From: Dicyema japonicum
Lineage: Eukaryota; Animalia; Dicyemida
Length of the DNA stretch: 64,000 nucleotides
Reading direction: 5' to 3'
Assembly (NCBI GenBank): GCA_011109175.1
Contig: RDEW01000069.1
Coordinates: 117,758 to 181,757, forward strand
Of this stretch, positions 4,597 through 46,980 are shown in pieces. Positions within the stretch are counted from its first letter, which is position 1. The number at the start of each line of letters is the position of its first letter. The translations under genes were made by a program, and so were the position numbers. Under the pieces are notes generated by a model. It was not told the origin of the DNA. It saw only the letters and a program-made list of their open reading frames with translations, and ran no database searches.

Positions 4597-4609
4597 TTTA
4601 TTGAAAATT

Positions 4610-7382: not shown

Positions 7383-7498
7383 TCCGGAAAAAAACTTTTA
7401 GAATTAGCATAAGAAAATCAATACTTTCTAAAGTTTATTCTGGAAGCACAATTTGAAAACATAAGTACGAAAAAATTCAAAATTTTCGATTTCAGAAA

Positions 7499-8852: not shown

Positions 8853-9263
8853 ATGGCACGAACAAAACAAACTGCTAGAAAATCAACTGGAGCAAAAGTT
8901 CCAAGGAAACAGCTTTCTGCTAAATCTGCACGCAAGTCAGTTTCTCAATTGGGTGGTGTAAAGAAGCCACATCGCTTTCGTCCTGGTGTCGTGGCAATGA
9001 GGGAGATCAGAAGATATCAAAAGAGTACTGACCTTCTATTGCGAAAGACACCGTTCCAAAGGGTTGTTAGAGAAGCAGCACAATTTATGAAGACAGATTT
9101 ACGTTTCCAATCATCGGCCATTGTTGCTCTTCAGGAGGCTGCAGAGACTTATTTGGTCGGGATTTTTGAGGATAGTAATTTGTGTGCAATACATGGAAAA
9201 CGAGTAACAATAATGCCACAGGATATGCACCTAGCAAGGAGAATTCGTGGTGAAAAAACATAA
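8853..9263 (+). CDS. H3: Divergent histone H3, 136 aa
   Basis: [13 protein letters not shown]...KKPHRFRPG...[12 protein letters not shown]. Confidence 0.97.
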
Positions 9264-10451
9264 CTTTTCGATAAATCAAATAAATATAATTTGTCTCTTT
9301 TTTTTAAATTAACCTAATCCCGACAAAATTTAGGAAAAAGTAAGATAATCCAATCCTTTCGCCTAATTGATAATGTTTTTCGAGACGCAATGTCGTTTTA
9401 AATTGTTAATTCACGGGAATTTCTAATCATACGCAGTTTCTATCAACTAGCTAAAAATAGCCTATATAAAACCCAATGTAACAAACTAACCATATCAAAT
9501 CTCCCTTTAATTACATAAATAAGACAAATTTTTAATTTTGACACTGTTAAAAAAACAAAAAACTATTTCAATTTGATTTTAATATAAAAAATTAAATTAA
9601 TCGCTGTCGAAAAATTGGGGTCAAAAATCCAGGGTTTTGCGGCTGTTTGATCTCAAACCAAGTTCTTTCCACGCGTCTTGCTTTTACGCGTTAAAATATG
9701 AAATCAGATTGAAAATTGGACGCACGTGTGCGGAGATTTGATAATTGATTATTTTTTAGTTTTTAGAAATTAAATTTGTCTATTATTCTTGTTTATGTAA
9801 GCCTTGTTAACCTTTAACTAAATTAATTTATTTTTTTGATTATCCAATTGCTACATTCTAAGATAGTTCTAGATATTGACTTAGTCAGCTAGGCTTACAG
9901 TTGGTTAGTAATAATGTAACTTTTTTCAAAATAACTTTTGTAAGTGACTGATTATTGTATTTAGGAGACTGAATCGGTATATAGATTGGAGCAACTTTCT
10001 ACGACCTAATCAATTTGGATTCCGTCCGGGAAGATCATGTGGAGATTGTATCCAATCACTAAACTACGAAATTATAAATACATTGGAGAAGAAATTGATT
10101 TGTCTAATTAAATTTGTCTACTATTCTTGTTTATGTAAGTCTTGTTATTCTTTAACTAAATTAATTTATTTTTTTTCATTATCCAATTGCTACAAGATAG
10201 TTCTAGATATTGACTTGTCAGCTAGGGTTACAGTTGGTTAGTAATAATGTAACTTTTTGCAAGATAACTTTTGTAAGTAATTAAGTTTCAATTTTATCAA
10301 TAGGGTTTTACTCCTTTGGAGTAATTTTCCGATAGATATCTTGACAAAATGAAGGCAGATGTCTTATTACTTAGGGATCAAATAGATTTCTGGCTAGCAA
10401 GTACTATAGTGATAAGAGTCAATTAAAGTAAAGGTTTATTTAATAAAATTG

Positions 10452-10814
10452 TTAAGTGGATGCAGGTTTTGCGGGTTCAGCACTTTTGCGACAGATGTAT
10501 CTTCCGCAAGAGATTATTGCATTTTGGGTAAGTTCTTTTAATTCGTCATCGGCATTGATTGCGACAGACAGGTGACAAGGTTTGATCCTTCGCTTTGCAG
10601 CCTTGAGTGCAGTATTACCACAAAGTTCCAGCACTTCAGCACATAGATACTCCATTACAGCTCCAACGTAGATGGCAGCACCAACTGCAACTCGCATTCT
10701 GGTCTCACTTCTCAAGCATCTATGAATTCGACCAACTGGAAATTGCAAGCCTGCTCTAACTGATTTGCTTTTCGCTTTTGTACGTACTTTTCCACCTTTA
10801 CCGCGAGTAGACAT
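10452..10814 (-). CDS. H2A: Histone H2A
   Basis: Same protein as 4234-4596; start taken at MSTRG. Confidence 0.95.
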   Translation of the reverse strand: MSTRGKGGKVRTKAKSKSVRAGLQFPVGRIHRCLRSETRMRVAVGAAIYVGAVMEYLCAEVLELCGNTALKAAKRRIKPCHLSVAINADDELKELTQNAIISCGRYICRKSAEPAKPAST

Positions 10815-10980: not shown

Positions 10981-11349
10981 ATGGTTCAAAAAGTGAGTAC
11001 TAAAGGATCTAAACGGGCGGCGGTTAAAGTTAGTACCACAACACGTGCCTTACGAAAAAAGAAAAAGCGATCCCAAAACTATCATTTGTACATTCTCAGG
11101 ATTTTGAAATCTGTCCACACTGATTTGGGGATGTCAAAGAAAGCTATGATGGCTATGGACAGCTTTACTTTTGACATTTACGAAAAAATCAAGAACGAAG
11201 CTTGCAATTTAGTTCAGCATAATAGCAAAGCTACTATCACATCGAGAGAAATTCAAACAGCAGTACGCTTGATTTTGCCTGGAGAATTGGCAAAGCATGC
11301 TATTACCGAAGGGGCAAAGGCGGTCACCAAGTATACCAATACTAAGTGA
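10981..11349 (+). CDS. H2B: Divergent histone H2B, 122 aa
   Basis: [20 protein letters not shown]...[23 protein letters not shown]. Confidence 0.97.
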
Positions 11350-11613: not shown

Positions 11614-13153
11614 ATGTCAGGACGTGGTAAAGGTGGAAAAGGAGGAAAGTCAGTGCAAAGCGATTTAAAAAGATCCTGATCGATAACGTAAGAAGTTTGG
11701 ACGATTATGAGGACATCTCACGTGTGGTCTGCGACACAGCGGCCCACGTGGTACAAGGACTCTTCGAAAATAAGCCCTCTATTGGATTATATTTTAGAGG
11801 AGTCCGAGGAGTCGAGAAGCTCAGAAGGGTCGTTCGCGACTCGATCCTTCTGTCGTTCAGAGTCAATATGGGGATCGATGGCAGGGCTGCTTTCCACACT
11901 GCAGCGGACATCCCCACACAGCAAGCGGTTGATCAAGCTGTGCCTGCACCGAGGAGGATGGAGGTTGAGAGCAAGACTCAGCCTCTTGAAATGAATCAAG
12001 GACCGAGAACCGAGGGCAGGGCTGAATCCGTCACACAGCCGCGGTCCAACAGGCTGTGCCTGCCCTCGACGAAGGAAGACAAGAGGACCGTCTCCCAATG
12101 ACTGTAGGCTGGACTACAGTAGGGAGAAAGAGGAAGTCTGCGGTTTCTGCCAAACCGCAGAACGTGCGTGATTCGGGTCCAGAAACCGCAAAGTGCCCTA
12201 AAAAGCATTTTGCAGGCTCGAATCAATCCAGAGCGCACGTGCCGAAAGAAAAGAAGAAAGAACAGGTATTCGGAGGACTAACTACACTAGTTCGGCTAGA
12301 GGTGCCGAAGATGGGAGTGGTTAAACTCCTAAGTGGCATAGGTACTCTGGCTACCTATGCGAAAGGAAGGATCGTCAGACGAGGAGAATCCCACTTGTTG
12401 GTGGGATTCAGAAATGACGTGGACGCCTCAGCTTTTGAAGCTGAGGTGAATAAGAAGGTTCCTTTTGGGCCCGGGGCACATAACATGTCTCGGGTCATCC
12501 CCAAGGTACACGACTCGATTGTACTAGTCTTCGGAGTCCTCTGGACTTTGTTGATGAGGATGTACTCGAGTACATCAAAAAGGACTACCCCACGGCGCAC
12601 AAGATCGAGCGCTTCAAGAGTGGGAGTCAGAGATTAAGGACTCTCAAGGTCTGGATCAGGTCCGGAGCAGAAGCTGAAAGGATCTGCCTTGAGAAGTTAA
12701 AGATAGGTTACTTTAGATTTGGTGTGGCCCGAGAGCGACCGGTAGCAATCCAGTGCTACAGATGCCAGGGATTCGGCCACACCAGCTCCCGCTGCACTTA
12801 ATAAAGAGAAGTGCCTAAATTGCGGGGGTCCACATTCGCGGAAGGCTTGCCAAACAAGTGGCAAGTCTCTCAAGTGCGTGAACTGTGGCGCAAAAGGACA
12901 CAGGGCGAGCCATACCAAGTGCCCCCTGTATCAGGAGGCGACGGAGAAGGTACCACAGGGGAGAAGGCAGGCGCCCTCCTCTGGAATGGTCAGTGATGTA
13001 GGCACTATCCATCGGATGGTGAGTAACTATTGCAATGCCACTGGGGCTTCGCTCCAAACGGCACTTAGGGATATCGCGTTATCTCATAGGTTAAATAATG
13101 CGTCGAAGGGATGCTCAACATCGTCTTCGAAACAGGAGGACTTTAGAATATGA
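11614..13153 (+). CDS. H4(1-25)::LINE ORF1 fusion with several single-base indels
   Basis: Junction ATC GAT AAC | GTA AGA AGT TTG GAC GAT is in frame ([20 protein letters not shown]). Confidence 0.7.
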
Positions 13154-13303
13154 CGAAGACTTTTATAAAACGAAGGAGGCACGGGGAAGACGAATGTGAT
13201 GGCACGAAAACGCTGCCGCAAGGCGGTGAAAGGGCCTTTAGTTAGTTCTTCCCTAACTTAACATTTGTTTTTTTGCCTAATAAAGATTTTTCCGTTTTTC
13301 TTC
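11688..13303 (+). mobile_element. ORF1-only family A derivative in the H4 5' end
   Basis: ORF1 with 3 CCHC knuckles joined directly to the family A 3' UTR, AATAAA and TTCCG tail; no ORF2. Confidence 0.92.
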
Positions 13304-16868: not shown

Positions 16869-18542
16869 ATGTCTGGACGTGGTAAAGGTGGAAAAGGAGG
16901 AAAGTCAGGTGCAAAGCGATTCAAAAAGATCCTGATCGATAACATTCAGGGATCACAACACATTCCGTACGAAATCTTGAGGATTATCAGGACATCTCAC
17001 GTGTGGTCTGTGATACAGCGGCCCACGTGGTACAAGGACTCTTCGAAAAATAAGCCCTCTATTGGATTATATTTTAGAGGAGTCCGAGGAGTAGAGAAGC
17101 TCAGAAGGGTCGTTCGCGACTCGATCCTTCTGTCGTTCAGAGTCAATATGGGGATCGATGGCAGGGCTGCTTTCCACACTGCAGCGGACATCCCACACAG
17201 CAAGCGGTTGATCAAGCTGTGCCTGCACCAAGGAGGATGGAGGTTGAGAGCAAGACTCAGCCTCCTGTAATGGATCAAAGGACCGAGGAAAAACATCCCA
17301 GCAAAGCTAGCGGTGAACAAGCTGTGCCTGGGACAAGGAGGATGGAGGTTGAGGGCAAGACTCAGCCTCTTGAAATGAATCAAGGACGAGAACCGAGGGC
17401 AAGGGCTGAATCCGTCACACAGCCAAGCGGTCCAAACAGGCTGTGCCTGCCCTCGACGAAGTGCGACAAGAGGACCATCTCCCAATGACTGTAGGCTGGA
17501 CTACAGTAGGGAGAAAGAGGAAGTCTGCGGTTTCTGCCAAACCGCAGAACGTGCGTGATTCGGGTCCAGAAAACCGCAAAGTGCCCTAAAAGCATTTTTG
17601 CAGGCTCGAATCAATCCAGAGCGCACGTGCCGAAAGAAAAGAAGAAAGAACAGGTATTCGGAGGACTAACTACACTAGTTCGGCTAGAGGTGCCGAAGAT
17701 GGGAGTGGTTAAACTCCTAAGTGGCATAGGTACTCTGGCTACCTATGCGAAAGAAGGATCGTCAGACGAGGAGAATCCCACTTGTTGGTGGGATTCAGAA
17801 ATGACGTGGACGCCTCAGCTTTTGAAGCTGAGGTGAATAAGAAGGTTCCTTTTGGGCCCGGGGCACATAACATGTCTCGGGTCATCCCCAAGGTACACGA
17901 CTCGATTGTACTAGTCTTCCGGAGTCCCTCTGGACTTTGTTGATGAGGATGTACTCGGAGTACATCAAAAGGACTACCCCACGGCGCACAAGATCGAGCG
18001 CTTCAAGAGTGGAGTCAGAGACTAAGGACTCTCAAGGTCTGGATCAGGTCCGGAGCGGAAGCTGAGAGGATCTGCCTTGAGAAGTTTAAGATAGGTTACT
18101 TTAGATTTGGTGTGGCCCGAGAGCGACCGGTAGCAATCCAGTGCTACAGATGCCAGGGATTCGGCCACACCAGCTCCCGCTGCACTTATAAAGAGAAGTG
18201 CCTAAATTGCGGGGTCCACATTCGCGAAGGCTTGCCAAACAAGTGGCAAGTCTCTTCAAGTGCGTGAACTGTGGCGCAGAAGGACACAGGGCGAGCCATA
18301 CCAAGTGCCCCCCTGTATCAGGAGGCGACGGAGAAGGTACCACAGGGGAGAAGGCAGGCGCCCTCCTCTGGAATGGCCAGTGATGTAGGCACTATCCATC
18401 GGATGGTGAGTAACTATTGCAATGCCACTGGGGCTTCGCTCCAAACGGCACTTAGGGATATCGCGTTTATCTCATAGGTTAAATAATGCGTCGAAGGGAT
18501 GCTCAACAATCGTCTTCGAAACAGGAGGACTTTAGAATATGA
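16869..18542 (+). CDS. H4(1-30)::LINE ORF1 fusion with many single-base indels
   Basis: Same junction as 32002 (gatcacaa|cacattccgtacgaaatc); in frame if one homopolymer G is restored. Confidence 0.65.
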
Positions 18543-18693
18543 CGAAGACTTTTATAAAACGAAGGAGGCACGGGGAAGACGAATGTGATGGCACGAAACG
18601 CTGCCGCAAGGCGGTGAAAGGGCCTTTAGTTAGTTCTTCCCTGATTACTTAACATTTGTTTTTTGCCTAATAAAGATTTTTCCGTTCCGATCC
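16959..18693 (+). mobile_element. ORF1-only family A derivative in the H4 5' end
   Basis: ORF1 plus 3' UTR plus ttccgttccga tail, followed by cgcaaagcaATG of H4. Confidence 0.92.
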
Positions 18694-18702
18694 CGCAAAG
18701 CA

Positions 18703-19011
18703 ATGTCAGGACGTGGGAAAGGTGGAAAAGGAGGAAAGTCAGGTGCAAAGCGATTCAAAAAGATCCTGATCGATAACATTCAGGGGATCACAAAGCCTGC
18801 AATTAGGAGACTGTGTCGTAGAGGAGGTGTGAGAAGGATCTCAGGCAAAATTTATGAGGAGACAAGATGTGTCCTCAGGATCTTTATTGAGAGAACTATA
18901 AGAGATTGCATTTCCTATTGTGAACACGCTAAAAGAAAAACTGTGATTGCTATGGATGTGGTCTATGCCTTGAAGAGACAAGGGAGAACAATATATGGAT
19001 TTGGTGGATGA
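18703..19011 (+). CDS. H4: Histone H4 regenerated downstream of the insertion
   Basis: Intact 102-aa ORF. Confidence 0.95.
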
Positions 19012-19385
19012 CTTTTTTTTAAATAAAAAAAATAAATTTTTATCTATATTAAATTCTGAGATATAAATTAAGTCGTTTTAGGGTTACAAGAAGCTTTCTA
19101 TAAATAGTGTTTTTTATGAATTCTAATTACACAGTGATAATTTTAAAATTTTGTAAAATAGCTTTTTTCTACTTTAATGTGGTAAAATTTTGCGTAAATA
19201 ATGCATTTGATAATTTTAAAAAAAATTGTGTTTTGATAATTTTCCAAATTGTGCTTCCGGAAAAAAATTACTTGCTCTCTCGTATTGTTGCAAAATTGCG
19301 TGTGCTTCCGCGAAAAATTTAAGCGTACGTTAGTATTAATACATCGCAGAAAAAAATCGATAATTTTCATTTTCATCGATAAATA

Positions 19386-19796
19386 ATGGCACGAACAAAA
19401 CAAACTGCTAGAAAATCAACTGGAGCAAAAGTTCCAAGGAAACAGCTTTCTGCTAAATCTGCACGCAAGTCAGTTTCTCAATTGGGTGGTGTAAAGAAAC
19501 CACATCGCTTTCGTCCTGGTGTCGTGGCAATGAGGGAGATCAGAAGATATCAAAAGAGTACTGACCTTCTATTGCGAAAGACACCGTTCCAAAGGGTTGT
19601 TAGAGAAGCAGCACAATTTATGAAGACAGATTTACGTTTCCAATCATCGGCCATTGTTGCTCTTCAGGAGGCTGCAGAGACTTATTTGGTCGGGATTTTT
19701 GAGGATAGTAATTTGTGTGCAATACATGGAAAACGAGTAACAATAATGCCACAGGATATGCACCTAGCAAGGAGAATTCGTGGTGAAAAAACATAA
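19386..19796 (+). CDS. H3: Histone H3
   Basis: Intact 136-aa ORF. Confidence 0.97.
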
Positions 19797-21062
19797 CTTT
19801 TCGATAAATCAAATAAATATAATTTGTCTCTTTTTTTTAAATTAACCTAATCCCGACAAAATTTAAGAAAAATTAAAAGTCCAATCCTTTCGCCTAATTG
19901 ATAATGTTTTTCGAGACGCAATGTCGTTTTAAATTGTTAATTCACGGAATTTCTAATCATACGCAGTTTCTATCAACTAGCTAAAAATAGCCTATATAAA
20001 ACCCAACTTCAATGTAACAAACTAACCAAATAAATCTCAAGTACAAAAATAAGACAAATTTTTAATTTTGAGACTGTTTAAAAAACAAAAAAACTATATC
20101 ATTTTGGTTTAATGTAACAAACTAACCATATAAAATCTCCCTTTAATTACATAAATAAGACAAATTTTTAATTTTAACGCTGTTAAATAACAATTTGATT
20201 ATAATATAAAAATTAAATAAATCGCTGTCGAAAAATTGGGGTCAAAAATCCAGGTTTTTGCGGCTGATTGATCTCAAACCAAGTTCATTCAACGCGTCTT
20301 GCTTTTGCGCGTTAAAATGTGAAATCAGATTGATAATTGGACGCACGTGGGCGGAGATTTGATAATTGATTAATTTTAGTTTTTAGAAATTAAATTTGTC
20401 TATTATTCTTGTTTATGTAAGCCTTGTTAACCTTTAACTAAATTAATTTATTTTTTTGATTACCTAAATGCTCATTCTAAGATAGTTCTAGATATTGACT
20501 TAGTCAGCTAGGCTTACAGTTGGGTAGTATTAATGTAACTTTTTTCTAAATAACTTTTGTAAGTGACTGATTATTCTATTTAAGAGACTGAAACGGTATA
20601 TAGAGGGGAGCAACTTTCTACGACCTAATCAATTTGGATTCCGTCTGGGAAGATCATGTGGAGATTGTATCCACTCACTAAACTACGAAATTATAAATAC
20701 ATTGGAGAAGAAATTGATTTGTCTAATTAAATTTGTCTACTATTCTTGTTTATGTAAGTCTTGTTATCCTTTAACTAAATTAATTTAGTTTTTTGATTAT
20801 CCAATTGCTACAAGATAGTTCTTGACTTGTCAGCTAGGGTTACAGTTGGTTAGTAATAATGTAACTTTTTGCAATATAACTTTTGTAAGTAATTAAGTTT
20901 CAATTTTATTTATAGGGTTTTACTCCTTTGGATAATTTTCCGATAGATATCTTGACAAAATAAAGGCAGATGTCTTATTACTTAGGGATCAAATAGATTT
21001 CTGGCTAGCAAGTACTATATTGATAAGAGTCAATTAAAGTAAAGGTTTATTTAATAAAATTG

Positions 21063-21425
21063 TTAAGTGGATGCTGGTTTTGCGGGCTCAGCACTTTTGC
21101 GACAGATGTATCTTCCGCAAGAGATTATTGCATTTTGGGTAAGTTCTTTTAATTCGTCATCGGCATTGATTGCGACAGACAGGTGACAAGGTTTGATCCT
21201 TCGCTTTGCAGCCTTGAGTGCAGTATTACCACAAAGTTCCAGCACTTCAGCACATAGATACTCCATTACAGCTCCAACGTAGATGGCAGCACCAACTGCA
21301 ACTCGCATTCTGGTCTCACTTCTCAAGCATCTATGAATTCGACCAACTGGAAATTGCAAGCCTGCTCTAACTGATTTGCTTTTCGCTTTTGTACGTACTT
21401 TTCCACCTTTGCCGCGAGTAGACAT
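21063..21425 (-). CDS. H2A: Histone H2A
   Basis: Intact 120-aa ORF. Confidence 0.95.
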   Translation of the reverse strand: MSTRGKGGKVRTKAKSKSVRAGLQFPVGRIHRCLRSETRMRVAVGAAIYVGAVMEYLCAEVLELCGNTALKAAKRRIKPCHLSVAINADDELKELTQNAIISCGRYICRKSAEPAKPAST

Positions 21426-21587
21426 TTTATTGAAAATTTTGAATTTTTTCGTACTTATGTTTTTAAATTGTGCTTCCGGAAAAAACTTTTAAATTAGCAT
21501 AAGAAAATCAATACTTTCTAAAGTTTATTCTGGAAGCACAATTTGAAAACATAAGTACGAAAAAATTCAAAATTTTTGATTTAGACT

Positions 21588-21955
21588 ATGGTTCAAAAAG
21601 TTAGCACAAAAGGATCTAAAAGGCTGCAGTTAAAGTTAGTAGCACAACACGTGCCTTACGAAAAAAGAAAAAGCGATCCCAAAACTATCATTTGTACATT
21701 CTGAGGATTTTGAAATCTGTCCACACTGATTTGGGGATGTCAAAGAAAGCTATGATGGCTATGGACAGCTTTACTTTTGACATTTACGAAAAAATCAAGA
21801 ACGAAGCTTGCAATCTAGTTCAGCATAATAGCAAAGCTACTATCACATCAAGAGAAATTCAAACAGCAGTACGCTTGATTTTGCCTGGAGAATTGGCAAA
21901 GCATGCTATTACCGAAGGGGCAAAGGCGGTCACCAAGTATACCAATACTAAGTGA
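21588..21955 (+). CDS. H2B: Histone H2B (1-nt indel near the 5' end)
   Basis: Aligns to intact copies. Confidence 0.88.
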
Positions 21956-22248
21956 TTTTTACTTGATATAATAAAGAAAACTTGTTTTCTAACCATTTTT
22001 TTCCTTACATAAAAATAGCCCACGTGTCATAATCTTAACAAAAGAATGTTTTTTATTAATTTTAACGCAATAAGAACGTTTTTTATTATTTTAACGCTAT
22101 TTAAAAAGTCCGTTTTAGTGTGTTTTCCAATTTTCACTTTAATATCGATTTGTGCTTCCGTGAAAAACTTTTAATATTATCGATTTGTGCTTCGGCGAAA
22201 AATTTTTGCGTCGTCAATTTATAAACGCCAAATTTGGAGCGCAAAGCA

Positions 22249-22557
22249 ATGTCTGGACGTGGTAAAGGTGGAAAAGGAGGAAAGTCAGGTGCAAAGCGAT
22301 TCAAAAAGATCCTGATCGATAACATTCAGGGGATCACAAAGCCTGCAATTAGGAGACTGTGTCGTAGAGGAGGTGTGAGAAGGATCTCAGGCAAAATTTA
22401 TGAGGAGACAAGATGTGTCCTCAGGATCTTTATTGAGAGAACTATAAGAGATTGCATTTCCTATTGTGAACACGCTAAAAGAAAAACTGTGATTGCTATG
22501 GATGTGGTCTATGCCTTGAAGAGACAAGGGAGAACAATATATGGATTTGGTGGATGA
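22249..22557 (+). CDS. H4: Histone H4, uninterrupted
   Basis: Intact 102-aa ORF. Confidence 0.97.
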
Positions 22558-22904
22558 CTTTTTTTAATAAAAAAATAAATTTTTATCTATATTAAATTCT
22601 GAGATATAAATTAAGTCGTTTTAGGGTTACAAGAAGCTTTCTATAAATAGTGTTTTTTATGAATTCTAAATACACAGTGATAATTTTAAAATTTTGTAAA
22701 ATAGCTTTTTTCTACTTTAATGTGGTAAAATTTTGCTTAAAATAATGCTTTGATAATTTTAAAAAAAATTGTGTTTTGATAATTTTCCAAATTGTGCTTC
22801 CGGAAAAAAATTACTTGCTCTCTCGTATTGTTGCAAAATTGCGTGTGCTTCCGCGAAAAATTTAAGCGTACGTTAGTATTAATACAAAATTTTTGATTTA
22901 GACT

Positions 22905-24574
22905 ATGGTTCAAAAAGTTAGCACTAAAGGATCTAAACGGGCTGCAGTTAAAGTTAGTAGCACAACAAGTTCCGTAAGAAGTTTGGACGATTACCAGGAC
23001 ATCTCACGTGTGGTCTGTGATACAGCGGCCCACGTGGTAAATGGACTCTTCGAAAATAAGCCCTCTATTGGATTATATTTTAGAGGAGTCCGAGGAGTCG
23101 AGAAGCTCAGAAGGGTCGTTCGCGACTCGATCCTTCTGTCGTTCAGAGTCAATATGGGGATCGATGGCAGGGCTGCTTTCCACGCTGCAGCGGACATCCC
23201 CACACAGCAAGCGGTTGATCAAGCTGTGCCTGCACCGAGGAGGATGGAGGTTGAGAGCAAGACTCAGCCTCCTATAATGGATCAAGGGACATGGAAAAAG
23301 ACCAGGCCTACTTCATACACATCAGAGGACATCCCCACACAGCAAGCGGTTGAACAAGCTGTGCCTGCACCGAGGAGGATGGAGGTTGAGAGCAAGACTC
23401 AGCCTCTTGAAATGAATCAAGGACCGAGAACCGAGGGCAGGGCTGAATCCGTCACACAGCCAGCGGTCCAACAGGCTGTGCCTGCCCTCGACGAAGTGCG
23501 ACAAGAGGACCATCTCCCAATGACTGTAGGCTGGACTACAGTAGGGAGAAAGAGGAAGTCTGCGGTTTCTGCCAAACCGCAGAACGTGCGTGATTCGGGT
23601 CCAGAAACCGCAAAGTGCCCTAAAAAGCATTTTGCAGGCTCGAATCAATCCAGAGCGCACGTGCCGAAAGAAAAGAAGAAAGAACAGGTATTCGGAGGAC
23701 TAACTACACTAGTTCGGCTAGAGGTGCCGAAGATGGGAGTGGTTAAACTCCTAAGTGGCATAGGTACACTGGCTACCTATGCGAAAGGAAGGATCGTCAG
23801 ACGAGGAGAATCCCACTTGTTGGTGGGATTCAGAAATGACGTGGACGCCTCAGCTTTTGAAGCTGAGGTGAATAAGAAGGTTCCTTTTGGGCCCGGGGCA
23901 CATAACATGTCTCGGGTCATCCCCAAGGTACACGACTCGATTGTACTAGTCTTCGGAGTCCCTCTGGACTTTGTTGATGAGGATGTACTCGAGTACATCA
24001 AAAAGGACTACCCACGGCGCACAAGATCGAGCGCTTCAAGAGTGGGAGTCAGAGACTAAGGACTCTCAAGGTCTGGATCAGGTCCGGAGCAGAAGCTGAA
24101 AGGATCTGCCTTGAGAAGTTAAAGATAGGTTACTTTAGATTTGGTGTGGCCCGAGAGCGACCGGTAGCAATCCAGTGCTACAGATGCCAGGGATTCGGCC
24201 ACACCAGCTCCCGCTGCACTTATAAAGAGAAGTGCCTAAATTGCGGGGGTCCACATTCGCGGAAGACTTGCCAAACAAGTGGCAAGTCTCTCAAGTGCGT
24301 GAACTGTGGCGCGGAGGGACACAGGGCGAGCCATACCAAGTGCCCCCTGTATCAGGAGGCGACGGAGAAGGTACCACAGGGGAGAAGGCAGGCGCCCTCC
24401 TCTGGAGTGGTCAGTGATGTAGGCACTATCCATCGGATGGTGAGTAACTATTGCAATGCCACTGGGGCTTCGCTCCAAACGGCACTTAGGGATATAGCGT
24501 TATCTCATAGGTTAAATAATGCGTCGAAGGGATGCTCAACATCGTCTTCGGAACAGGAGGACTTTAGAATATGA
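22905..24574 (+). CDS. H2B(1-21)::LINE ORF1 fusion, ORF1-only type, one indel near 24012
   Basis: [32 protein letters not shown]...; C-terminus ...[23 protein letters not shown]. Confidence 0.82.
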
Positions 24575-24730
24575 CGAAGACTTTTATAAAACGAAGGAGG
24601 CACGGGGAAGACGAATGTGATGGCACGAAAACGCTGCCGCAAGGCGGTGAAAGGGCCTTTAGTTAGTTCTTCCCTGATTACTTAACATTTGTTTTTTTGC
24701 CTAATAAAGATTTTTCCGTTCCGTTCCGTT
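22968..24730 (+). mobile_element. ORF1-only family A derivative preceded by an H2B leader (22886-22967)
   Basis: Ends AATAAAGATTTTTCCGTTCCGTTCCGTT followed by a second H2B leader. Confidence 0.92.
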
Positions 24731-24735
24731 AGACT

Positions 24736-26364
24736 ATGGTTCAAAAAGTTAGCACAAAAGGATCTAAACGGGCTGCAGTTAAAGTTAGTAGCACAAAAAG
24801 TTCCGTAAGAAGTTTGGACGATTACCAGGACATCTCACGTGTGGTCTGTGATACAGCGGCCCACGTGGTAAATGGACTCTTCGAAAATAAGCCCTCTATT
24901 GGATTATATTTTAGAGGAGTCCGAGGAGTCGAGAAGCTCAGAAGGGTCGTTCGCGACTCGATCCTTCTGTCCTTCCGAATAAACATGGGGATCGATGGCA
25001 GGGCTGCTTTCCACGCTGCAGCGGACATCCCCACACAGCAAGCGGTTGATCAAGCTGTGCCTGCACCGAGGAGGATGGAGGTTGAGAGCAAGACTCAGCC
25101 TCCTATAATGGATCAAGGGAAATGGAAAAAGACCAGGCCTACTTCATACACATCAGAGGACATCCCCGCACAGCTAGCGGTTGAACAAGCTGTGCCTGGG
25201 ACGAGGAGGATGGAGGTTGAGAGCAAGACTCAGCCTCTTGAAATGAATCAAGGACCGAGAACAGAGGGCAGGGTTGAATCCGTCACACAGCCAGCGGTCC
25301 AACAGGCTGTGCCTGCCCTCGACGAAGGAAAACAAGAGGACCGTCTCCCGATGACTGTAGGCTGGACTACAGTAGGGAGAAAGAGGAAGTCTGCGGTTTC
25401 TGCCAAACCGCAGAACGTGCGTGATTCGGGTCCAGAAACCGCAAAGTGCCCTAAAAAGCATTTTGCAGGCTCGAATCAATCCAGAGCGCACGTGCCGAAA
25501 GAAAAGAAGAAAGAACAGGTATTCGGAGGGCTAACTACACTAGTTCGGCTAGAGGTGCCGAAGATGGGAGTGGTTAAACTCCTAAGTGGCATAAGTAGTC
25601 TGGCTACCTATGCGAAAGGAAGGGTCGTCAGACGAGGAGAATCCCACTTGTTGGTGGGATTCAGAAATGACGTGGACGCCTCAGCTTTTGAAGCTGAGGT
25701 GAATAAGAAGGTTCCTTTGGGCCCGGGGCACATAACATGTCTCGGGGTCATCCCCAAGGTACACGACTCGATTGTACTAGTCTTCGGAGTCCCTCTGGAC
25801 TTTGTTGATGAGGATGTACTCGAGTACATCAAAAAGGACTACCCCACGGCGCACAAGATCGAGCGCTTCAAGAGTGGGAGTCAGAGACTAAGGACTCTCA
25901 AGGTCTGGATCAGGTCCGGAGCAGAAGCTGAGAGGATCTGCCTTGAGAAGTTAAAGATAGGTTACTTTAGATTTGGTGTGGCCCGAGAGCGACCGGTAGC
26001 AATCCAGTGCTACAGATGCCAGGGATTCGGCCACACCAGCTCCCGCTGCACTTATAAAGAGAAGTGCCTAAATTGCGGGGGTCCACATTCACGGAAGGCC
26101 TGTCAATCCAGAGTCAGGTCTCTCAAGTGCGTGAACTGTGGCTTGGAGGGACACAGGGCGAGCCATACCAAGTGCCCCCTGTATCAGGAGGCGACGGAGA
26201 AGGTACCACAGGGGAGAAGGCAGGCGCCCTCCTCTGGAGTGGTCAGTGATGTAAGCGCTGTCCACCGCGTGGTAAGTCGATACTGTAGCAGCACAGGTTC
26301 AACGTTCCCTAATGCGCTTAGGGACATTGCGCTCTGCGATAGGAAGGTAAGTGCGGCGAAGTGA
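24736..26364 (+). CDS. H2B(1-20)::LINE ORF1 fusion protein, 542 aa, intact (Gag-like, three CCHC zinc knuckles)
   Basis: H2B N-terminus in frame with ORF1; [43 protein letters not shown]. Confidence 0.9.
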   Translation: MVQKVSTKGSKRAAVKVSSTKSSVRSLDDYQDISRVVCDTAAHVVNGLFENKPSIGLYFRGVRGVEKLRRVVRDSILLSFRINMGIDGRAAFHAAADIPTQQAVDQAVPAPRRMEVESKTQPPIMDQGKWKKTRPTSYTSEDIPAQLAVEQAVPGTRRMEVESKTQPLEMNQGPRTEGRVESVTQPAVQQAVPALDEGKQEDRLPMTVGWTTVGRKRKSAVSAKPQNVRDSGPETAKCPKKHFAGSNQSRAHVPKEKKKEQVFGGLTTLVRLEVPKMGVVKLLSGISSLATYAKGRVVRRGESHLLVGFRNDVDASAFEAEVNKKVPLGPGHITCLGVIPKVHDSIVLVFGVPLDFVDEDVLEYIKKDYPTAHKIERFKSGSQRLRTLKVWIRSGAEAERICLEKLKIGYFRFGVARERPVAIQCYRCQGFGHTSSRCTYKEKCLNCGGPHSRKACQSRVRSLKCVNCGLEGHRASHTKCPLYQEATEKVPQGRRQAPSSGVVSDVSAVHRVVSRYCSSTGSTFPNALRDIALCDRKVSAAK

Positions 26365-29074
26365 TGTTACGCATCATTTCAGTTAATGTTAGGTCCCTCC
26401 GGAGAAGAAGGAAGGCCATCGAGGATCTTCTGGACTCTTTGGAGGTGGACATCTTGGTCCTTAACGAGACCAAGAGTAAGGATACGGCTGCTGCAGGCTT
26501 TAAAGGCTATACTAGTTGTCATCTCTTGTGGAATGACACACATAGAGGTTCGGGCACTAGTATCTATTGGAGGACGAGTCTAGCAGCAGTCGTCCAAGGT
26601 ATTGCAAATTGTCCTCATTGCGAGCTAATATTATTACGAATCAGGTTATCTGGCTTTAGCGTTGTTATAGGGGCAATGTATGCCAAGCAGTTGTGGTTGT
26701 GTAAGGACCACATTAAAACTGTATTTGACATTCATCCCCATTGCGTTATTTTTGGTGATCTGAATGCTAAGCATTCAGATTTTGGCTGTTTTGTTAATAA
26801 TAGGGCTGGATCAGCACTCCGGGAATTAGCTTGGAATCTTGGGCTCTCAGTCACTACATCGACGGACCCCAATCACAAAGATACACGAGGAGGAGAGGAC
26901 TTCTTGGGTATGGCCGTAGCCTCCCCTTCATTAATTGGTATGCTCTCTGTACCTCGTGTTCTTAGGGACATCGGAAGCGATCACCGTCCCCTACTCACTG
27001 AGCTTCACGAACCTGTTCGACCTCAGGCCCCAATTGGCTATGACTTGGGCTCTGGCACTTGGGATAACCTGGAGTCGTTCATGGATAGAAAACTCCCTTC
27101 TCTCAAAGGGCAAGTTTGTAGTGAAGCGGACGTGGAGGAATTGGATGCCACCCTGGGTGGTATCCTCGAGGAATACATGCGGACTAACTTCCGGTTACGT
27201 CCGCAAGGTGGAGGCTCCGCACGAATTCCAGGCCTGATTTTAAGTAAGATAACACTTAGAAAGAGGTACCTGCGGTTCAAAGCGAGGAGCACGTATGAAG
27301 AGAACCGGATCTTCTACCAGAAGAAGGTAAACACCTTACGAAGGGAAATCCGGAAGGCGCTTGTTGACTATCAGAGCAACAAATGGAGGAGGGCCTGCGA
27401 GAGGGTGAACCCCGCATGGCCGGACTTCTGGAGTCAGCTGAAGCGCCTGTCGGGCAGAGGGGAAGAGTCATCTGCGCGTACCCTGTGTCGTGCGGACGGT
27501 TCTAAAACCTCTGACCCGACTGAAATAGCGAGCATCTTTGCAGGTAGCTTTAGGGCAGTTACTGCAGTTCGACCAGAGAACTTTGTCGAGTTAACAGCTC
27601 GACAAAGTATAGAGGACGTCATCTCTGCGGAGAGACGGAAGTTGAGCCACTCTCGGGAGATCCCGAAGGTGGCATGCATCACCGAGGAGGAGGTCCGGGC
27701 CGCGATAAGTAAATCGAAGAACAACGCACCGGGCCAAGACAAGATCCCCATGGCCCTTTTCAAGAAAGGACCTGGAAGTCTCGTGAACACCTTGGTAAGA
27801 TTGTACAACGGTAGTACAGGTTGGGTTACGTTCCTAGGCGTTGGAAGGAAGCGGAACTGGTTTTTGTAAGGAAACCAGGAAAACCTCCTGAAGACCCTAG
27901 TAGCTACCGCCCTATAAGCTTGTTACCTGCCGTTGCTAAAATCTTAGAGAGAGTGATACACCAGAGGTTAACCCAGGAATGCATAATAAAAGACACCCTC
28001 TCGGACCTTCAGATGGGATTCCGTGAGGGGCGTTCCTGTGGGGACTGCCTCTGGAGGTTGAGCTCTCAGATTCGTGAAAGGAGCAAGAAGCAATGCACAG
28101 CCGCGTTGTTCCTGGATGTGGAGAGGGCGTTCGACTCGGTCTGGCATGACGGCCTCCGTTGCGCCCTCGCAGAAGGAGGAATATCTCTGGAGCTAAGGAG
28201 CTGGTTATCAAGCTTCTTAGAGGATCGGATGAACTATGTAAGGCATAAAGGTTGCCGATCTAGTTTGTTTAGATCTAACCGGGGAGTTCCACAAGGGTCG
28301 GTTTTGAGCCCCACCCTTTTCAACGTTTACATGTCTACACTTCCCCACCCAGCCAATGTGAGGACGGAGATGGCTATCTATGCGGACGACATAGTACTCT
28401 GGGATCACTCGTGGAAACCAGATGTAGCGTGTCGGAGGATTCAAGTAGCTGTCAATGAAATCATACGCTGGTGTGGGAGCAGAGGACTTAGGCTGAGACC
28501 TGAGAAATGTAAGTTATTAGTTTTTGGCCGCCCTAAGCGGTCTAATAATTTAATACCTAGAGTAACCATCTATGGGGTACCTATAGAGGTTACTGGGCGG
28601 ACGAGCTACCTTGGAGTGACATTCAACTCCAAGTGTAGTTTCCAGGAGCACACCGCCCTCGTTAAGAGGCGGGCTGTGCAAAGATTAGGAGCGTTGAGGG
28701 CTTTTCAGCTGAGTCGCGATGCCTGGGCCAAAGTGTTCAACGCCATGGTGCTGCCTATGCTCACCTATGGTGCGCACTCCTGGTATTGTAGTGAGGAACG
28801 CGAAAAGTGCCTCACCAACTTGAGGAAGGTTCGGCGGCGGGCAATACGGTATTCTATAGGATTGTCTTATAGAGCGCCGCTGCCCGAAAGAGGATATCCG
28901 ATTTCAGGACCCGAGGAAGTGATTAAAAAGATCTTAAAAAATTAAAGAAGGAGGCACGGGGAAGACGAATGGATGCACGAAAACGCTGCCGCAAGGCGGT
29001 GAAAGGGCCTTAGTTAGTTCTTCCCTATTACTTAACATTTGTTTTTTGCCTAATAAAGATTTTTCCTTCCTTTC
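24797..29074 (+). mobile_element. Near-intact autonomous family A LINE (ORF1 + ORF2 + 3' UTR), probably I/Jockey/R1-group, 3' end 27 nt upstream of the H3 ATG
   Basis: Two ORFs, AATAAA and ttccttcc tail, then aatcgataattttc of the H3 leader. Confidence 0.95.
26364..28945 (+). CDS. LINE ORF2: APE endonuclease + reverse transcriptase, ~860 aa, with single-base indels near 27815 and 28900
   Basis: ISVNVRSL, LNETK, GDLNAKH, SDH; APGQDKI, YRPISLL, FLDVERAFDSV, GVPQGSVLSPTLF, YADD, YLGV. Confidence 0.92.
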
Positions 29075-29101
29075 AATCGATAATTTTCATTTTCATTAAT
29101 A

Positions 29102-29512
29102 ATGGCACGAACAAAACAAACTGCTAGAAAATCAACTGGAGCAAAAGTTCCAAGGAAACAGCTTTCTGCTAAATCTGCACGCAAGTCAGTTTCTCAATTG
29201 GGTGGTGTAAAGAAACCACATCGCTTTCGTCCTGGTGTCGTGGCAATGAGGGAGATCAGAAGATATCAAAAGAGTACTGACCTTCTATTGCGAAAGACAC
29301 CGTTCCAAAGGGTTGTTAGAGAAGCAGCACAATTTATGAAGACAGATTTACGTTTCCAATCATCGGCCATTGTTGCTCTTCAGGAGGCTGCAGAGACTTA
29401 TTTGGTCGGGATTTTTGAGGATAGTAATTTGTGTGCAATACATGGAAAACGAGTAACAATAATGCCACAGGATATGCACCTAGCAAGGAGAATTCGTGGT
29501 GAAAAAACATAA
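29102..29512 (+). CDS. H3: Histone H3
   Basis: Intact 136-aa ORF. Confidence 0.97.
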
Positions 29513-31147: not shown

Positions 31148-31342
31148 TTTATTGAAAATTTTGAATTTTTTCGTACTTATGTTTTTAAATTGTGCTTCCG
31201 GAAAAAACTTTTAGAATTAGCATAAGAAAATCAATACTTTCTAAAGTTTATTCTGGAAGCACAATTTGAAAACATATAAGTACGAAAAAATTCAAAATTT
31301 TCGATTTCAGACTATTTTGATTTGATTGAATTTTCGAAGACT

Positions 31343-32001: not shown

Positions 32002-33675
32002 ATGTCAGGACGTGGTAAAGGTGGAAAAGGAGGAAAGTCAGGTGCAAAGCGATTCAAAAAGATCCTGATCGATAACATTCAGGGGATCACAACACATTCC
32101 GTACGAAATCTTGAGGATTATGAGGACATCTCACGTGTGGTCTGCGACACAGCGGCCCACGTGGTACAAGGACTCTTCGAAAATAAGCCCTCTATTGGAT
32201 TATATTTTAGAGGAGTCCGAGGAGTAGAGAAGCTCAGAAGGGTCGTTTCGCGACTCGATCCTTCTGTCATTCAGAGTTAATATGGGGATCGATGGCAGGG
32301 CTGCTTTCCACACTGCAGCGGACATCCCCACACAGCAAGCGGTTGATCAAGCTGTGCCTGCACCGAGGAGGAGGATGGAGGTTGAGAGCAAGACTCAGCC
32401 TCCTGTAATGGATCCAAGGACCGAGGAAAACATCCCAGCACAGCTAGCGGTTGAACAAGCTGTGCCTGGGACGAGGAGGATGGATGTTGAGAGCAAGACT
32501 CAGCCTCTTGAAAAGAATCAAGGACCGAGAACCGAGGGCAGGGCTGAATCCGTCACACAACCAGCGGTCCAACAGGCTGTGCCTGCCCTCGACGAAGTGC
32601 GACAAGAGGACCATCTCCCGATGACTGTAGGCTGGACTACAGTAGGGAGAAAGAGGAAGTCTGCGGTTTCTGCCAAACCGCAGAACGTGCGTGATTCGGG
32701 TCCAGAAACCGCAAAGTGCCCTAAAAGCATTTTTGCAGGCTCGAATCAATCCAGAGCGCACGTGCCGAAAGAAAAGAAGAAAGAACAGGTATTCGGAGGA
32801 CTAACTACACTAGTTCGGCTAGAGGTGCCGAAGATGGGAGTGGTTAAACTCCTAAGTGGCATAGGTACACTGGCTACCTATGCGAAAGAAGGATCGTCAG
32901 ACGAGGAGAATCCCACTTGTTGGTGGGATTCAGAAATGACGTGGACGCCTCAGCTTTTGAAGCTGAGGTGAATAAGAAGGTTCCTTTTGGGCCCGGGGCA
33001 CATAACATGTCTCGGGTCATCCCCAAGGTACACGACTCGATTGTACTAGTCTTCGGAGTCCCTCTGGACTTTGTTGATGAGGATGTACTCGAGTACATCA
33101 AAAAGGACTACCCCACGGCGCACAAGATCGAGCGCTTCAAGAGTGGGAGTCAGAGACTAAGGACTCTCAAGGTCTGGATCAGGTCCGGAGCGGAAGCTGA
33201 GAGGATCTGCCTTGAGAAGTTAAAGATAGGTTACTTTAGATTTGGTGTGGCCCGAGAGCGACCGGTAGCAATCCAGTGCTACAGATGCCAGGGATTCGGC
33301 CACACCAGCTCCCGCTGCACTTATAAAGAGAAGTGCCTAAATTGCGGGGGTCCACATTCGCGGAAGGCTTGCCAAACAAGTGGCAAGTCTCTCAAATGCG
33401 TGAACTGTGGCGCAGAAGGACACAGGGCGAGCCATACCAAGTGCCCCCTGTATCAGGAGGCGACGGAGAAGGTACCACAGGGGAGAAGGCAGGCGCCCTC
33501 CTCTGGAATGGTCAGTGATGTAGGCACTATCCATCGGATGGTGAGTAACTATTGCAATGCCACTGGGGCTTCGCTCCAAACGGCACTTAGGGATATCGCG
33601 TTATCTCATAGGTTAAATAATGCGTCGAAGGGATGCTCAACATCGTCTTCGAAACAGGAGGACTTTAGAATATGA
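32002..33675 (+). CDS. H4(1-30)::LINE ORF1 fusion with a few single-base indels downstream
   Basis: Open across the junction: MSGRG...[27 protein letters not shown]. Confidence 0.8.
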
Positions 33676-33830
33676 CGAAGACTTTTATAAAACGAAGGAG
33701 GCACGGGGAAGACGAATGTGATGGCACGAAAAACGCTGCGCAAGGCGGTGAAAGGGCCTTTAGTTAGTTCTTCCCTGATTACTTAACATTTGTTTTTTGC
33801 CTAATAAAGATTTTTCCATTCCATTTTTCC
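32093..33830 (+). mobile_element. ORF1-only family A derivative in the H4 5' end
   Basis: ORF1 plus 3' UTR plus ttccattcca tail, followed by H4 upstream sequence from -55. Confidence 0.92.
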
Positions 33831-37445: not shown

Positions 37446-37809
37446 ATGTCTGGACGTGGTAAAGGTGGAAAAGGAGGAAAGTCAGGTGCAAAGCGATTCA
37501 AAAAGATCCTGATCGATAACATTCAGGGGATCACAAGTAACGAAGTTTGGAGATTATCAGGACATCTCACGTGTGGTCTGTGATACAGCGGCCACGTGGT
37601 AAAGGACTCTTCGAAAATAAGCCTCTATTGGATTATATTTTAGAGGAGTCCGAGGAGTAGAGAAGCTCAGAAGGGTCGTTCGCGACTCGATCCTTCTGTC
37701 GTTCAGAGTCAATATGGGGATCGATGGCAGGGCTGCTTTCCACACTGCAGCGGACATCCCCACACAGCAAGCGGTTGATCAAGCTGTGCCTGCACAGGAG
37801 GATGGAGGT
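37446..37809 (+). mobile_element. H4 5' end (37446-37536) joined to a family A 5' end, cut by the gap
   Basis: gatcacaa|gtaacgaagtttggagattatcaggac; error-rich contig end, so frame and subtype cannot be determined. Confidence 0.85.
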
Positions 37810-38325
37810 NNNNNNNNNNNNNNNNNNNNNNNNNNNNNNNNNNNNNNNNNNNNNNNNNNNNNNNNNNNNNNNNNNNNNNNNNNNNNNNNNNNNNNNNNNN
37901 NNNNNNNNNNNNNNNNNNNNNNNNNNNNNNNNNNNNNNNNNNNNNNNNNNNNNNNNNNNNNNNNNNNNNNNNNNNNNNNNNNNNNNNNNNNNNNNNNNNN
38001 NNNNNNNNNNNNNNNNNNNNNNNNNNNNNNNNNNNNNNNNNNNNNNNNNNNNNNNNNNNNNNNNNNNNNNNNNNNNNNNNNNNNNNNNNNNNNNNNNNNN
38101 NNNNNNNNNNNNNNNNNNNNNNNNNNNNNNNNNNNNNNNNNNNNNNNNNNNNNNNNNNNNNNNNNNNNNNNNNNNNNNNNNNNNNNNNNNNNNNNNNNNN
38201 NNNNNNNNNNNNNNNNNNNNNNNNNNNNNNNNNNNNNNNNNNNNNNNNNNNNNNNNNNNNNNNNNNNNNNNNNNNNNNNNNNNNNNNNNNNNNNNNNNNN
38301 NNNNNNNNNNNNNNNNNNNNNNNNN
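37810..38325. other. Assembly gap, 516 N; further single-N joins at 41088 and 59459
   Basis: N characters in the sequence. Confidence 1.
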
Positions 38326-44940: not shown

Positions 44941-45270
44941 TTTCTACAACTTTAACCTATATACCTACCACATGGTCCAGTTTATAACTTTGAAAAAATG
45001 AACTTTTTGATTATTTTTAGCCGTACTGATGAAATGGATCCTTAGAGAAAGATCCTTCTACATTATAATATGAGAAGCTTCAAGATATCCACATAAAGAG
45101 AAAATATCGAGACTACATCTTTTTGGTTGAACTAGCTGATGTGGTTCTTTCACACATATCGATAAGGATTAAAATAATATCTTTATGGAGACAATGATTT
45201 GAGTTCATTATGTTATAAATGATTTTATCCATAAGAATTATTATTCGTCCTGAGAGAAATAAATATAAGC

Positions 45271-45516
45271 ATTAAAGGAATTGACGAATATGAGGATGTC
45301 TCACGCGTGGTTCAGTGACTCTTCTCAAATAAACCTTCTATTGGAATTTATTTTAGAGATGTCAAAGGCTTGGAAAAACTCAGGCTGGTCGTTCGCGACT
45401 CGGTCCTCCTGGCTTTCCGAGTGAATATGGGGATCGATGGCAGGGCTGCTTTTCACACGGGAGCGGACATTTCCCCACAGTCAGCGGTTGAACATGCTGT
45501 GCCTGCTACGAGGAGG
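45271..45516 (+). mobile_element. Diverged remnant of a family-A-related ORF1 N-terminus
   Basis: [61 protein letters not shown]. Confidence 0.85.
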
Positions 45517-46980
45517 AAGACATTTGAGACATAAGTTTTCAATGGGATAACAGACCGAATTCAAGAATATTCATATTTCAGAATTGTTAAGAATTTATAA
45601 TTAATTTAATGATACAATCAAACTGTCTAAAAAAATTCAAAGAAAAAGAACATCCAGGAACCAGTAGCCATAACTCCATAGAATAATTTTATGGCCATCA
45701 ATATCTTGGATGTCAAAAATGTAATCATCATATACAAAAAAGGCTAACGTTATGAAATATGGAATTCAATATTAACTGAAAGTGTTAAAAAACCGATGTC
45801 TAGAGTATTATTAAGAACTTCAAAAAAAACACACATATCTGAAGAAAATTTATTCAATTATTTTTCTATTTCAGGTAAAAATTTAGTTGATGAGAATCAG
45901 TAAGTAAATATTATAATTGATGAAATCCTCAGACACAGAAAAAAAATTTTCAGGAATTTATGTAACCAAAAGGATGATTTTTCAAATGCAAGTTAATGAA
46001 TCTAAATACGCGTTTTAAATGATTATGGGACGAATCCATGGCTAAAGTTGAACAGATTTGAATCTCCATATGAAGAGATAAGTAAAACTACTCAATTTTT
46101 GTCAAACATCCAATCGAGGTTTATTTAATTTTTTATAACAGATTAAGGCACGTTCAGGTTAGGTTAAAATAGTCAACATGAGTCGAGTCAATTAAATATA
46201 GCTTTAAAAAAATAAATTCTTTGATTCAAAATCAATTAATATTGATTGAATAACAGGAGGTGACATGTCTTTTGAAAGGTGAAATGTTACCAGCACTAGA
46301 TGGGTAACCCGGGCAAGACGCGGCAGACTTTGTAGCTGATTACAATCAAAGGTTATCTCCTTTATAAAAAGTATTTATTATATATATTTTTAGTACAGAA
46401 AAATCGTCGATAATAATTTGTATAAAATCAAAAAGGTAGCCAGGATAAAGATGAAATAGGTTATGCAACGAAACCAATGCTCAAACAATAAAAATCGATA
46501 GTGAAGATTCAATATAGTTCGAATAAAATGAAGTAAATGTTATTTTTCTCTTCGAATTATATATTTTATTGGATTATTGATATAAACCAGGTGAAAAAAA
46601 GCTCAAAACTGCGGACAAGCAGACAATTTGAGATCGATTGCATTCGACAGAGGAGATTAACTCTAAATATTGTTTTGAGTGTTCCCCATGCGGTGCTATA
46701 AACATGTTGGCTTTCGTGAAAGTACCTTAATAATAATAATAAATTGAATTACTGAAAATATTCTTGACATGATGCAGATCATAACAATTCGAACAAACAG
46801 ACTAAAAAGAAATATTAACAAAAGAATATTAATAGGGGGAAATCAAATAGTAAAAAATAATCCATATTCATAGGTTAACAAAATATAAAATATATATTAG
46901 ACATTTTGATAACAACCTTCAACACTATTTGATGAATCCAATTATATAATGTTTGACAATACAACAGACGAATATTGTAA

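Follow-up and report, generated by a model that had tools for sequence, protein, structure and literature searches.

We analysed a 64,000-nucleotide (nt) window of the Dicyema japonicum genome (contig RDEW01000069.1, positions 117,758 to 181,757 of the forward strand; all positions below are counted from the first letter of this stretch), in which copies of a long interspersed nuclear element (LINE), here called family A, lie within a tandem array of histone genes. BLAST searches of four histone genes against the window place the array at ~4.2-38 kb, with the unit order H2A(-), H2B(+), H4(+), H3(+), and BLAST comparisons within the window give 96-100% identity for the histone genes between array units. 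The array assembly contains N gaps at 37810-38325. The published Dicyema japonicum genome measures 67.5 Mb and consists of 49% repeats; as to LINEs, the genome paper notes only that ORF2 copies are numerous (PMC6736024).

The window holds one full-length family A copy as well as several shorter ones (Table 1). In the full-length copy, the first open reading frame (ORF1, 542 residues) contains three CCHC zinc knuckles and a zf-CCHC_6 match, and the second (ORF2) has Pfam matches to Exo_endo_phos (1.4e-13), Exo_endo_phos_2 and RVT_1 (1.4e-40), arranged as an N-terminal APE-type endonuclease followed by a reverse transcriptase (RT). The best named RT matches are annotated as 'mobile element jockey'. 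Judged by these ORF1 and ORF2 domains and RT matches, family A is a non-long-terminal-repeat retrotransposon of the Jockey/R1 type. The stop codon of ORF1 and the AUG of ORF2 overlap (UGAUG, 26362-26366), so that expression of ORF2 plausibly depends on translation of ORF1. At its 3′ end the element reads aataaagattttt and then runs into a short CCGTT-like repeat. ORF2 is split near 27.82-27.87 kb as assembled; in most read contigs (short contigs from public runs, one sample plus one small DNA run) this place is one base longer or shorter than in the assembly, so that the break may be peculiar to the 24799 copy or reflect an assembly error. Read depth is lower over the 5′ region of ORF1 than over ORF2, and the read contigs show no transcript ends. 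Five further copies have lost ORF2 through one common internal deletion (26366 to 28944), which makes them non-autonomous derivatives. Among them, the short copy directly upstream of the full-length one has an ORF1 (22905-24059) that opens with H2B codons and is broken near 24.03 kb; this copy is a mosaic, its 5′ part resembling its neighbour and its core the other short copies. The copy at 32002..33830 has a frameshift at ~32280.

Table 1. Features of the histone array and of the family A and family B elements, in window positions.
Feature	Position	Strand	Remarks
Short family A copy between an H4 head (to nt +75, 1-nt deletion) and H4 from -9	11614..13303	+	
Short family A copy between an H4 head (to nt +90, 1-nt deletion) and H4 from ~-10	16869..18693	+	
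H4-H3 spacer with H3 promoter	22558..22886	+	TATA-like tattaataca ends at 22886 and abuts the first H2B head; from the alignment of upstream regions
H2B head 1	22887..22967	+	~18-21 nt of H2B 5′ leader, ATG at 22905, codons 1-21
Short family A copy, ORF2 deleted (ORF1 and ~130 nt of 3′ untranslated region)	22968..24730	+	tail aataaagattttt and (CCGTT)3
H2B head 2	24731..24798	+	agact, ATG at 24736, codons 1-21; directly after the tail of the short copy
H2B-tail::ORF1 chimera, open, 542 residues	24736..26364	+	62-codon element-specific N-terminus, 135-nt in-frame repeats, core, three CCHC knuckles
Full-length family A LINE proper	24799..29074	+	5′ end at the junction, through to tail ...tttttccttcctttc
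ORF2 (APE endonuclease and reverse transcriptase)	26364..28945	+	two frames, split near 27.82-27.87 kb
Intact H3 gene with the 27 nt left of its leader, downstream of the insert	29075..29512	+	
Short family A copy between an H4 head (to nt +90, intact, in frame) and H4 from -55	32002..33830	+	
Start of a family A copy on an H4 head (to nt +91)	37446..37809	+	out of frame as assembled, several 1-nt indels, assembly gap
Fragment of family B (80% identity to family A in the ORF1 5′ region)	45262..45517	+	second copy at 52552-52807

Every 5′-intact family A copy in the window joins the tail-coding start of a histone gene, which we call its head. At all junctions the element proper starts within one 9-nt interval, which argues for a defined RNA end rather than random truncation. 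The initial annotation had described ORF1 as continuing in frame from histone codons, and the junctions bear this out. In the H2B-headed copies, nt +63 of H2B is followed in frame by AGTTCCGTAAGAAGT, at 22967 and, with a change of aca to aaa, at 24798. At 32092, ACACATTCCGTACGAAAT follows nt +90 of H4, again in frame, and at 11687 the passage from H4 nt +75 to GTAAGAAGT keeps the frame at the junction itself. The claim needs qualification for the heads at 11687 and 16958, each of which has a 1-nt deletion, in the latter (a junction of the H4 +90 type) within a G run. A further junction at 37536, missing from the original list, leaves H4 at +91 and continues GTAA.GAAGT; it is out of frame as assembled, in an indel-rich copy next to the assembly gap. 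Many of the 1-nt indels sit in homopolymer runs, so they could be assembly errors. Open throughout is the chimera at 24736-26364, which begins with the first 20-21 residues of the array's H2B and continues as a CCHC-type LINE ORF1; it had been singled out as a fully open 542-residue frame, and it is the only such copy in the window. Junctions with three genes (H4, H2B and, in a relative described below, H3) are in frame in 3/3 cases, (1/3)^3 = 0.037, and counted by junction type the figure is 4/5 (p=0.045), both from small numbers. The H4 +75 head-element junction is also present as a loose end in independent read contigs, and the junctions at H4 +90 and H2B +63 share the microhomology CACA.

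Between the 5′ end of the element and Met84 (in MGIDG), no ATG occurs in the ORF1 frame, as the initial annotation had proposed, and the codons that lie there behave as coding sequence. The 62 codons ahead of this first internal methionine are open (P=0.03, shuffling), as are the 184 codons up to the conserved ORF1 core (P=3e-4, shuffling), and the stretch before Met84 contains 0 stops in the ORF1 frame versus 3 in each of the other two frames. Among family A copies, the ratio of nonsynonymous to synonymous differences (pN/pS) in this stretch is 0.08-0.56, similar to or below that of the ORF1 core. Against the two family B fragments listed in Table 1, which served as the outgroup, it is 0.41-0.50 in the ORF1 frame and ~0.95 and >2 in the other two; overall, the frame comparison gives 0.29-0.50 in the ORF1 frame versus 0.64 to >2 in the others, with 0 versus 2-6 stops. 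Family B moreover carries a 24-nt deletion that is in frame, and the internal repeats of ORF1 measure 135 nt, a multiple of three. By these comparisons, the codons ahead of the first internal methionine evolve as coding sequence under frame-specific purifying selection. The synonymous and conservative differences between copies that had been quoted for this stretch are indeed there, and the suspected coding constraint upstream of MGIDG is seen as a low pN/pS in the ORF1 frame only.

The head and the N-terminal part of ORF1 are additions of this lineage. A fish ORF1 homologue can be aligned only from residue 210, so that the first ~200 residues represent a lineage-specific extension, and a profile search returned 12,859 ORF1-like proteins, with a histone tail in 0 of the best 150. 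Word-indexed searches with the chimeric ORF1 or the ORF1 of the relative described below yielded no further histone-headed proteins. A derivation of the 62-residue N-terminus itself from a diverged piece of H4 or H2B was considered and dropped, since BLASTP gave no match. At the RNA level, the 5′ end of the element forms just two ordinary hairpins with weak covariation; a search against Rfam at gathering score gave no match anywhere in the window, nor did 24600-25400 yield one at E<=10, and no self-cleaving ribozyme resembling that of hepatitis delta virus was found. The H4-headed copies also contain an out-of-frame ATG (gattATGagg) that opens a 95-codon ORF overlapping the ORF1 N-terminus (11707-11994) and absent from the H2B-headed copies (gattaccagg). 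This overlapping ORF is probably without significance.

The positions of the inserts indicate that heads travel with the element. The composite of head, short copy, head and full-length copy was placed in the 5′ region of H3, not in an H2B gene, with the loss of ~12 nt of H3 leader according to an alignment of histone upstream regions. A 'ca' dinucleotide is common to both sides of the junction between the H3 promoter and the first H2B head, and the second head begins 5 nt before its ATG. H2B heads standing behind an H3 promoter mean that the head moved with the element; the earlier suggestion that each copy is driven by the promoter of the histone gene that supplied its tail thus does not hold in general. 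Each H4-headed copy occupies the normal place of H4, preceded by the native promoter and followed by a complete H4 (from -9, -10 or -55), so that H4 is duplicated around each of these inserts (-9..+75, -10..+90 and -55..+90). All family A inserts (5/5) and an insert of another LINE, family C, at H2A are in sense orientation, and the 3′ ends of the family A and C inserts lie 5-55 nt before the ATG of H4, H2B, H3 or H2A.

The family C LINE (4597-7400, minus strand, sense with respect to H2A) has a (TTTGA)n tail and ends ~14 nt before the H2A ATG. It was considered as a further fusion and rejected, being 5′-truncated and beginning in the H2A-H2B promoter region with no H2A head. Just before the H2B ATG at 31343, a 24-nt (TTTGA)n-like piece lies between AGACT repeats (31309-31342) and looks like a minimal, tail-only family C insert with a 5-bp duplication; its spot is the same as that where a family A tail abuts agactATG at 24731. 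By eye, the 3′ junctions (H4 -9, H3 ~-30, H2A -14) and the start of the first H2B head (-21) lie ~19-22 nt past the first base of a TATA-like box (tttataaa, tattaata or cataagta), and no common sequence motif was seen at the insertion sites. What fixes the position of the nick, or of the RNA 5′ end, may therefore be the promoter or the transcription start rather than a sequence motif.

A diverged relative provides a third histone fusion, away from histone genes. The best match to the family A RT is an Octopus sinensis protein with 54% identity, and through this match we fetched a 20.8-kb locus (L001) from VCDQ01012037.1 of assembly GCA_006345805.1. Its LINE (6223-10760) is 31-53% identical to family A in ORF1 and 42-55% identical in ORF2, and has homologous blocks in the 3′ untranslated region. 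The ORF1 of this element is open (L001:6227-7315, 362 residues) and its first 28/28 residues are residues 1-28 of the window's H3, in frame with the remainder; five of these residues depart from the canonical H3 sequence. At the DNA level, the head differs from the window's H3 at 10/84 positions, in 9 codons, all of them synonymous, and H3 homology begins 4 nt upstream of the ATG. The 11 residues that follow match H4 33-43, including Cys38 (9/11 identical, E=2e-4), with an AAG lysine codon as microhomology at the H3/H4 joint, so that the N-terminus of this ORF1 is a composite of two histones. No histone gene was found in the 20.8-kb locus. The LINE is either parasite DNA in the octopus assembly or the result of a parasite-to-host transfer; its neighbour, a hAT (FAM200/ZBED5) relic, is uninformative on whether the contig is of octopus or parasite origin. 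The finding adds a third histone in frame with ORF1, in a diverged lineage.

On the anatomy, reading frames, coding constraint and head mobility observed above, we base the following interpretation: family A is, in our judgement, likely to be a histone-locus-specific LINE that has no start codon and probably no promoter of its own, and whose ORF1 protein is made as a histone-tail::ORF1 chimera. Transcription from a histone promoter, translation from a histone AUG and the route by which heads are gained are what we infer from the sequence in this model. Target-primed reverse transcription would insert the element in sense orientation, with its 3′ end between a few and ~55 nt ahead of a histone ATG, leaving it directly behind a histone promoter, from which it would be transcribed. 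At the 5′ end of its RNA there would be a short leader from a histone gene, the AUG of that gene and the initial 21-30 tail codons, in frame with ORF1; indirect support for such a co-transcript comes from the heads, which start 4-21 nt before the histone ATG. On this model, the ORF1 protein could be made as a chimera from the histone AUG and ORF2 could then be translated through the stop/start overlap. As part of the copied RNA, the head would be reverse transcribed and moved with the element. Where head and target gene are the same, the 5′ end would be joined by homology, which would account for the duplication of 68-146 bp and for the histone gene that stays intact downstream of the insert; for a head and target of different genes, microhomology would serve. 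New heads would probably be gained by microhomology-guided joining or end joining, or by template switching onto abundant histone mRNA, and only in-frame heads would found lineages.

Several observations weigh against this interpretation. Of the copies in the window, only that at 24736 has an intact chimera; two of the H4 heads have lost 1 nt each, and at 37536 the assembled sequence leaves the frame. The H4 +75 junction and the one at 37536 may also derive from a junction like that at H4 +90, through deletions of 24 nt and 8 nt. Independent junction events are few and the frame statistic is modest (p about 0.04); the safest count of independent fusions is three genes, all in frame (p=0.037). 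Moreover, three different heads occur on short copies with one common ORF2 deletion, which, together with the mosaic copy at 22905, implies that heads have also been recombined or made anew at insertion. Internal methionines could serve as starts, either Met84 or Met206, the latter being the start of the fish homologue. Finally, the 5′ 260 nt fold better than shuffled sequences (z = -3.2), so that part of the conservation could act at the RNA level.

Some of these points are what would be expected if the fusions were a by-product of integration, arising from a bottom-strand nick in the histone leader and a top-strand nick 70-150 bp downstream of it that leave very long target-site duplications, the upstream copy of which would abut ORF1 by chance, with ORF1 translated from Met84, Met206 or a non-AUG codon. 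The duplicated H4 around each H4-headed insert, the different heads on copies that share one ORF2 deletion (as if each head came from its target) and the start of the fish ORF1 homologue near Met206 all fit this explanation, and there is precedent for a very long duplication in the rotifer R9, a site-specific LINE reportedly described by Gladyshev and Arkhipova in 2009 with a target duplication of 126 bp. Target duplication, however, produces neither an H2B head in the H3 promoter nor an H3 head in a histone-free locus, and it does not account for the frame-specific constraint on the 62 codons upstream of Met84. Furthermore, the (TTTGA)n insert at the same H2B site has a mere 5-bp duplication (AGACT, 31309-31342), so that widely staggered nicks are not the rule there, and we regard this explanation as unlikely. 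Given that one genomic window forms the basis of the analysis, that tandem arrays do amplify single insertions and that read depth at the ORF1 5′ end falls below that of ORF2, as is usual for LINEs, the coding signal might instead stem from an unseen, longer master copy with its own 5′ untranslated region, promoter and ATG, the array copies being slightly 5′-truncated, dead and spread by unequal crossing-over. Such a master is hard to reconcile with at least three to five junctions that all start the element within the same 9 nt, with histone sequence at the element 5′ end among the loose ends listed and with a relative that likewise starts on a histone head; we consider it improbable.

The head might also serve integration alone, with the complementary DNA annealing to the target for 5′ joining, as upstream 28S sequence does on R2/R1 transcripts, and the frame being irrelevant. 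Same-gene inserts look seamless upstream, as this would predict, and homology-assisted 5′ joining is established for R2Bm, reportedly through the work of Fujimoto et al. in 2004. This account leaves unexplained why the junctions in three genes are in frame, why no ATG precedes the constrained codons and why a head kept in a non-histone locus has only synonymous changes, which makes it, as a full explanation, hardly probable; a role of the head in integration is compatible with our main interpretation. Collapse or mis-joining of the tandem array during assembly could in principle mimic such fusions, and both the N gaps at 37810-38325 and the many 1-nt homopolymer differences between units would fit such an error. 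The H4 +75 junction and the element are nevertheless present in read contigs, the junctions are several and distinct, and the same architecture recurs in an independent assembly of another organism, so that we attach almost no weight to an artefact.

Known site-specific LINEs target ribosomal DNA (rDNA), telomeres, tRNA, snRNA and spliced-leader genes, and microsatellites. Family A resembles R1/R2 and SLACS/CZAR/CRE in its repeated insertion, in one orientation, into a tandem and highly transcribed gene family, and probably also, as far as the sequence suggests, in having no promoter of its own and a transcript with upstream target sequence. The ORF1/ORF2 layout, the three CCHC knuckles and the combination of APE and RT recall R1. 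Unlike R1/R2 and SLACS, however, family A targets RNA polymerase II-transcribed protein-coding genes, its upstream target sequence is coding and in frame with ORF1, and its head is kept and moved to other loci; compared with R2, no self-cleaving ribozyme was found at its 5′ end. The rotifer R9 likewise combines a site-specific LINE with a long target duplication and an intact copy of the target, but has a restriction-like endonuclease, an rDNA target and no coding fusion, and the variable duplication around family A (68-146 bp) fits better with an RNA that already includes the head.

Chimeric retroelements that arise by 5′ capture or template switching include SVA-F1, with MAST2 exon 1 at its 5′ end, the L1-U6 chimeras and Magnaporthe MINE. 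As in family A, a host 5′ segment becomes the 5′ end of the element and is propagated to new loci, with microhomology at the junctions. What these elements capture is a promoter or non-coding sequence, whereas family A has taken up a start codon together with an N-terminal peptide, and has done so repeatedly, in three histone genes and each time from the tail-coding part. ORFs of mitochondrial group I/II introns, such as aI1/aI2 of yeast COX1, are read in frame with the upstream exon; like them, family A has no start of its own and would be expressed as a fusion with N-terminal coding sequence of the host. The introns, in contrast, are spliced out and their protein is processed, whereas the family A LINE would stay in the transcript. 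New relative to all these systems is the combination of a histone target with recurrent in-frame capture of tail codons as the start of ORF1. The initial annotation knew of no such fusion strategy, and the full-text literature searched likewise contains no precedent for a histone-targeting LINE or a histone::ORF1 fusion.

Family A sequence also occurs in the window away from the histone-headed copies. A separate tandem repeat with a 7.2-kb period (42066-59458) contains 5′-truncated pieces of family A ORF2 that are 98-99% identical to 26138-29007, with a 250-nt family B fragment of the ORF1 5′ region ~360 nt downstream of them, and another family A piece lies at 1220-3049. The four core histones of the array are themselves strongly divergent and enriched in cysteine (in H4, for example, DCISYCEH), as judged from genes that include 8165-8473, 10452-10814 and 10981-11349. 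The array's H3 has only ~80% identity to the canonical H3, and an exact-protein look-up with it gave no match. Rfam searches for the histone 3′ stem-loop (RF00032) gave no match in the whole window and none at E<=5 over the complete repeat unit 18650-22250, and histone mRNAs of Dicyema japonicum may end differently. The H2A-H2B intergenic promoter (21438-21571) is an inverted duplication, with ...gaagcacaattt.aaaacataagtacgaaaaaattcaaaatttt common to both genes, and produces a spurious sub-threshold match to an Rfam microRNA.

Our results suggest a mode of mobile-element expression that has not been described so far, and family A probably represents a new variant of site-specific LINE biology. 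If family A is indeed expressed as a histone-tail::ORF1 chimera, it would combine an RNA polymerase II-transcribed, protein-coding target with a new expression strategy, translational fusion to the tail of a host protein, and would link retrotransposon expression to the transcription of histone genes in S phase. Its ORF1 protein would then mimic a histone tail, as a naturally occurring example of such mimicry by a transposon. A multigene family can tolerate such a parasite, since an intact histone ORF is regenerated behind each insert. A further, more tentative possibility is that in a clade of LINEs the histone tail acts as an obligatory, exchangeable first 'exon' of the ORF1 protein, which would steer the ribonucleoprotein to the nucleus, histone loci or S-phase chromatin, and that the H3-headed octopus copy marks a parasite-to-host transfer. 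The tail would then supply the AUG, an import signal and modification sites, closing the loop between targeting and expression. A captured tail would moreover tag its donor, making horizontal transfer between parasite and host directly testable.

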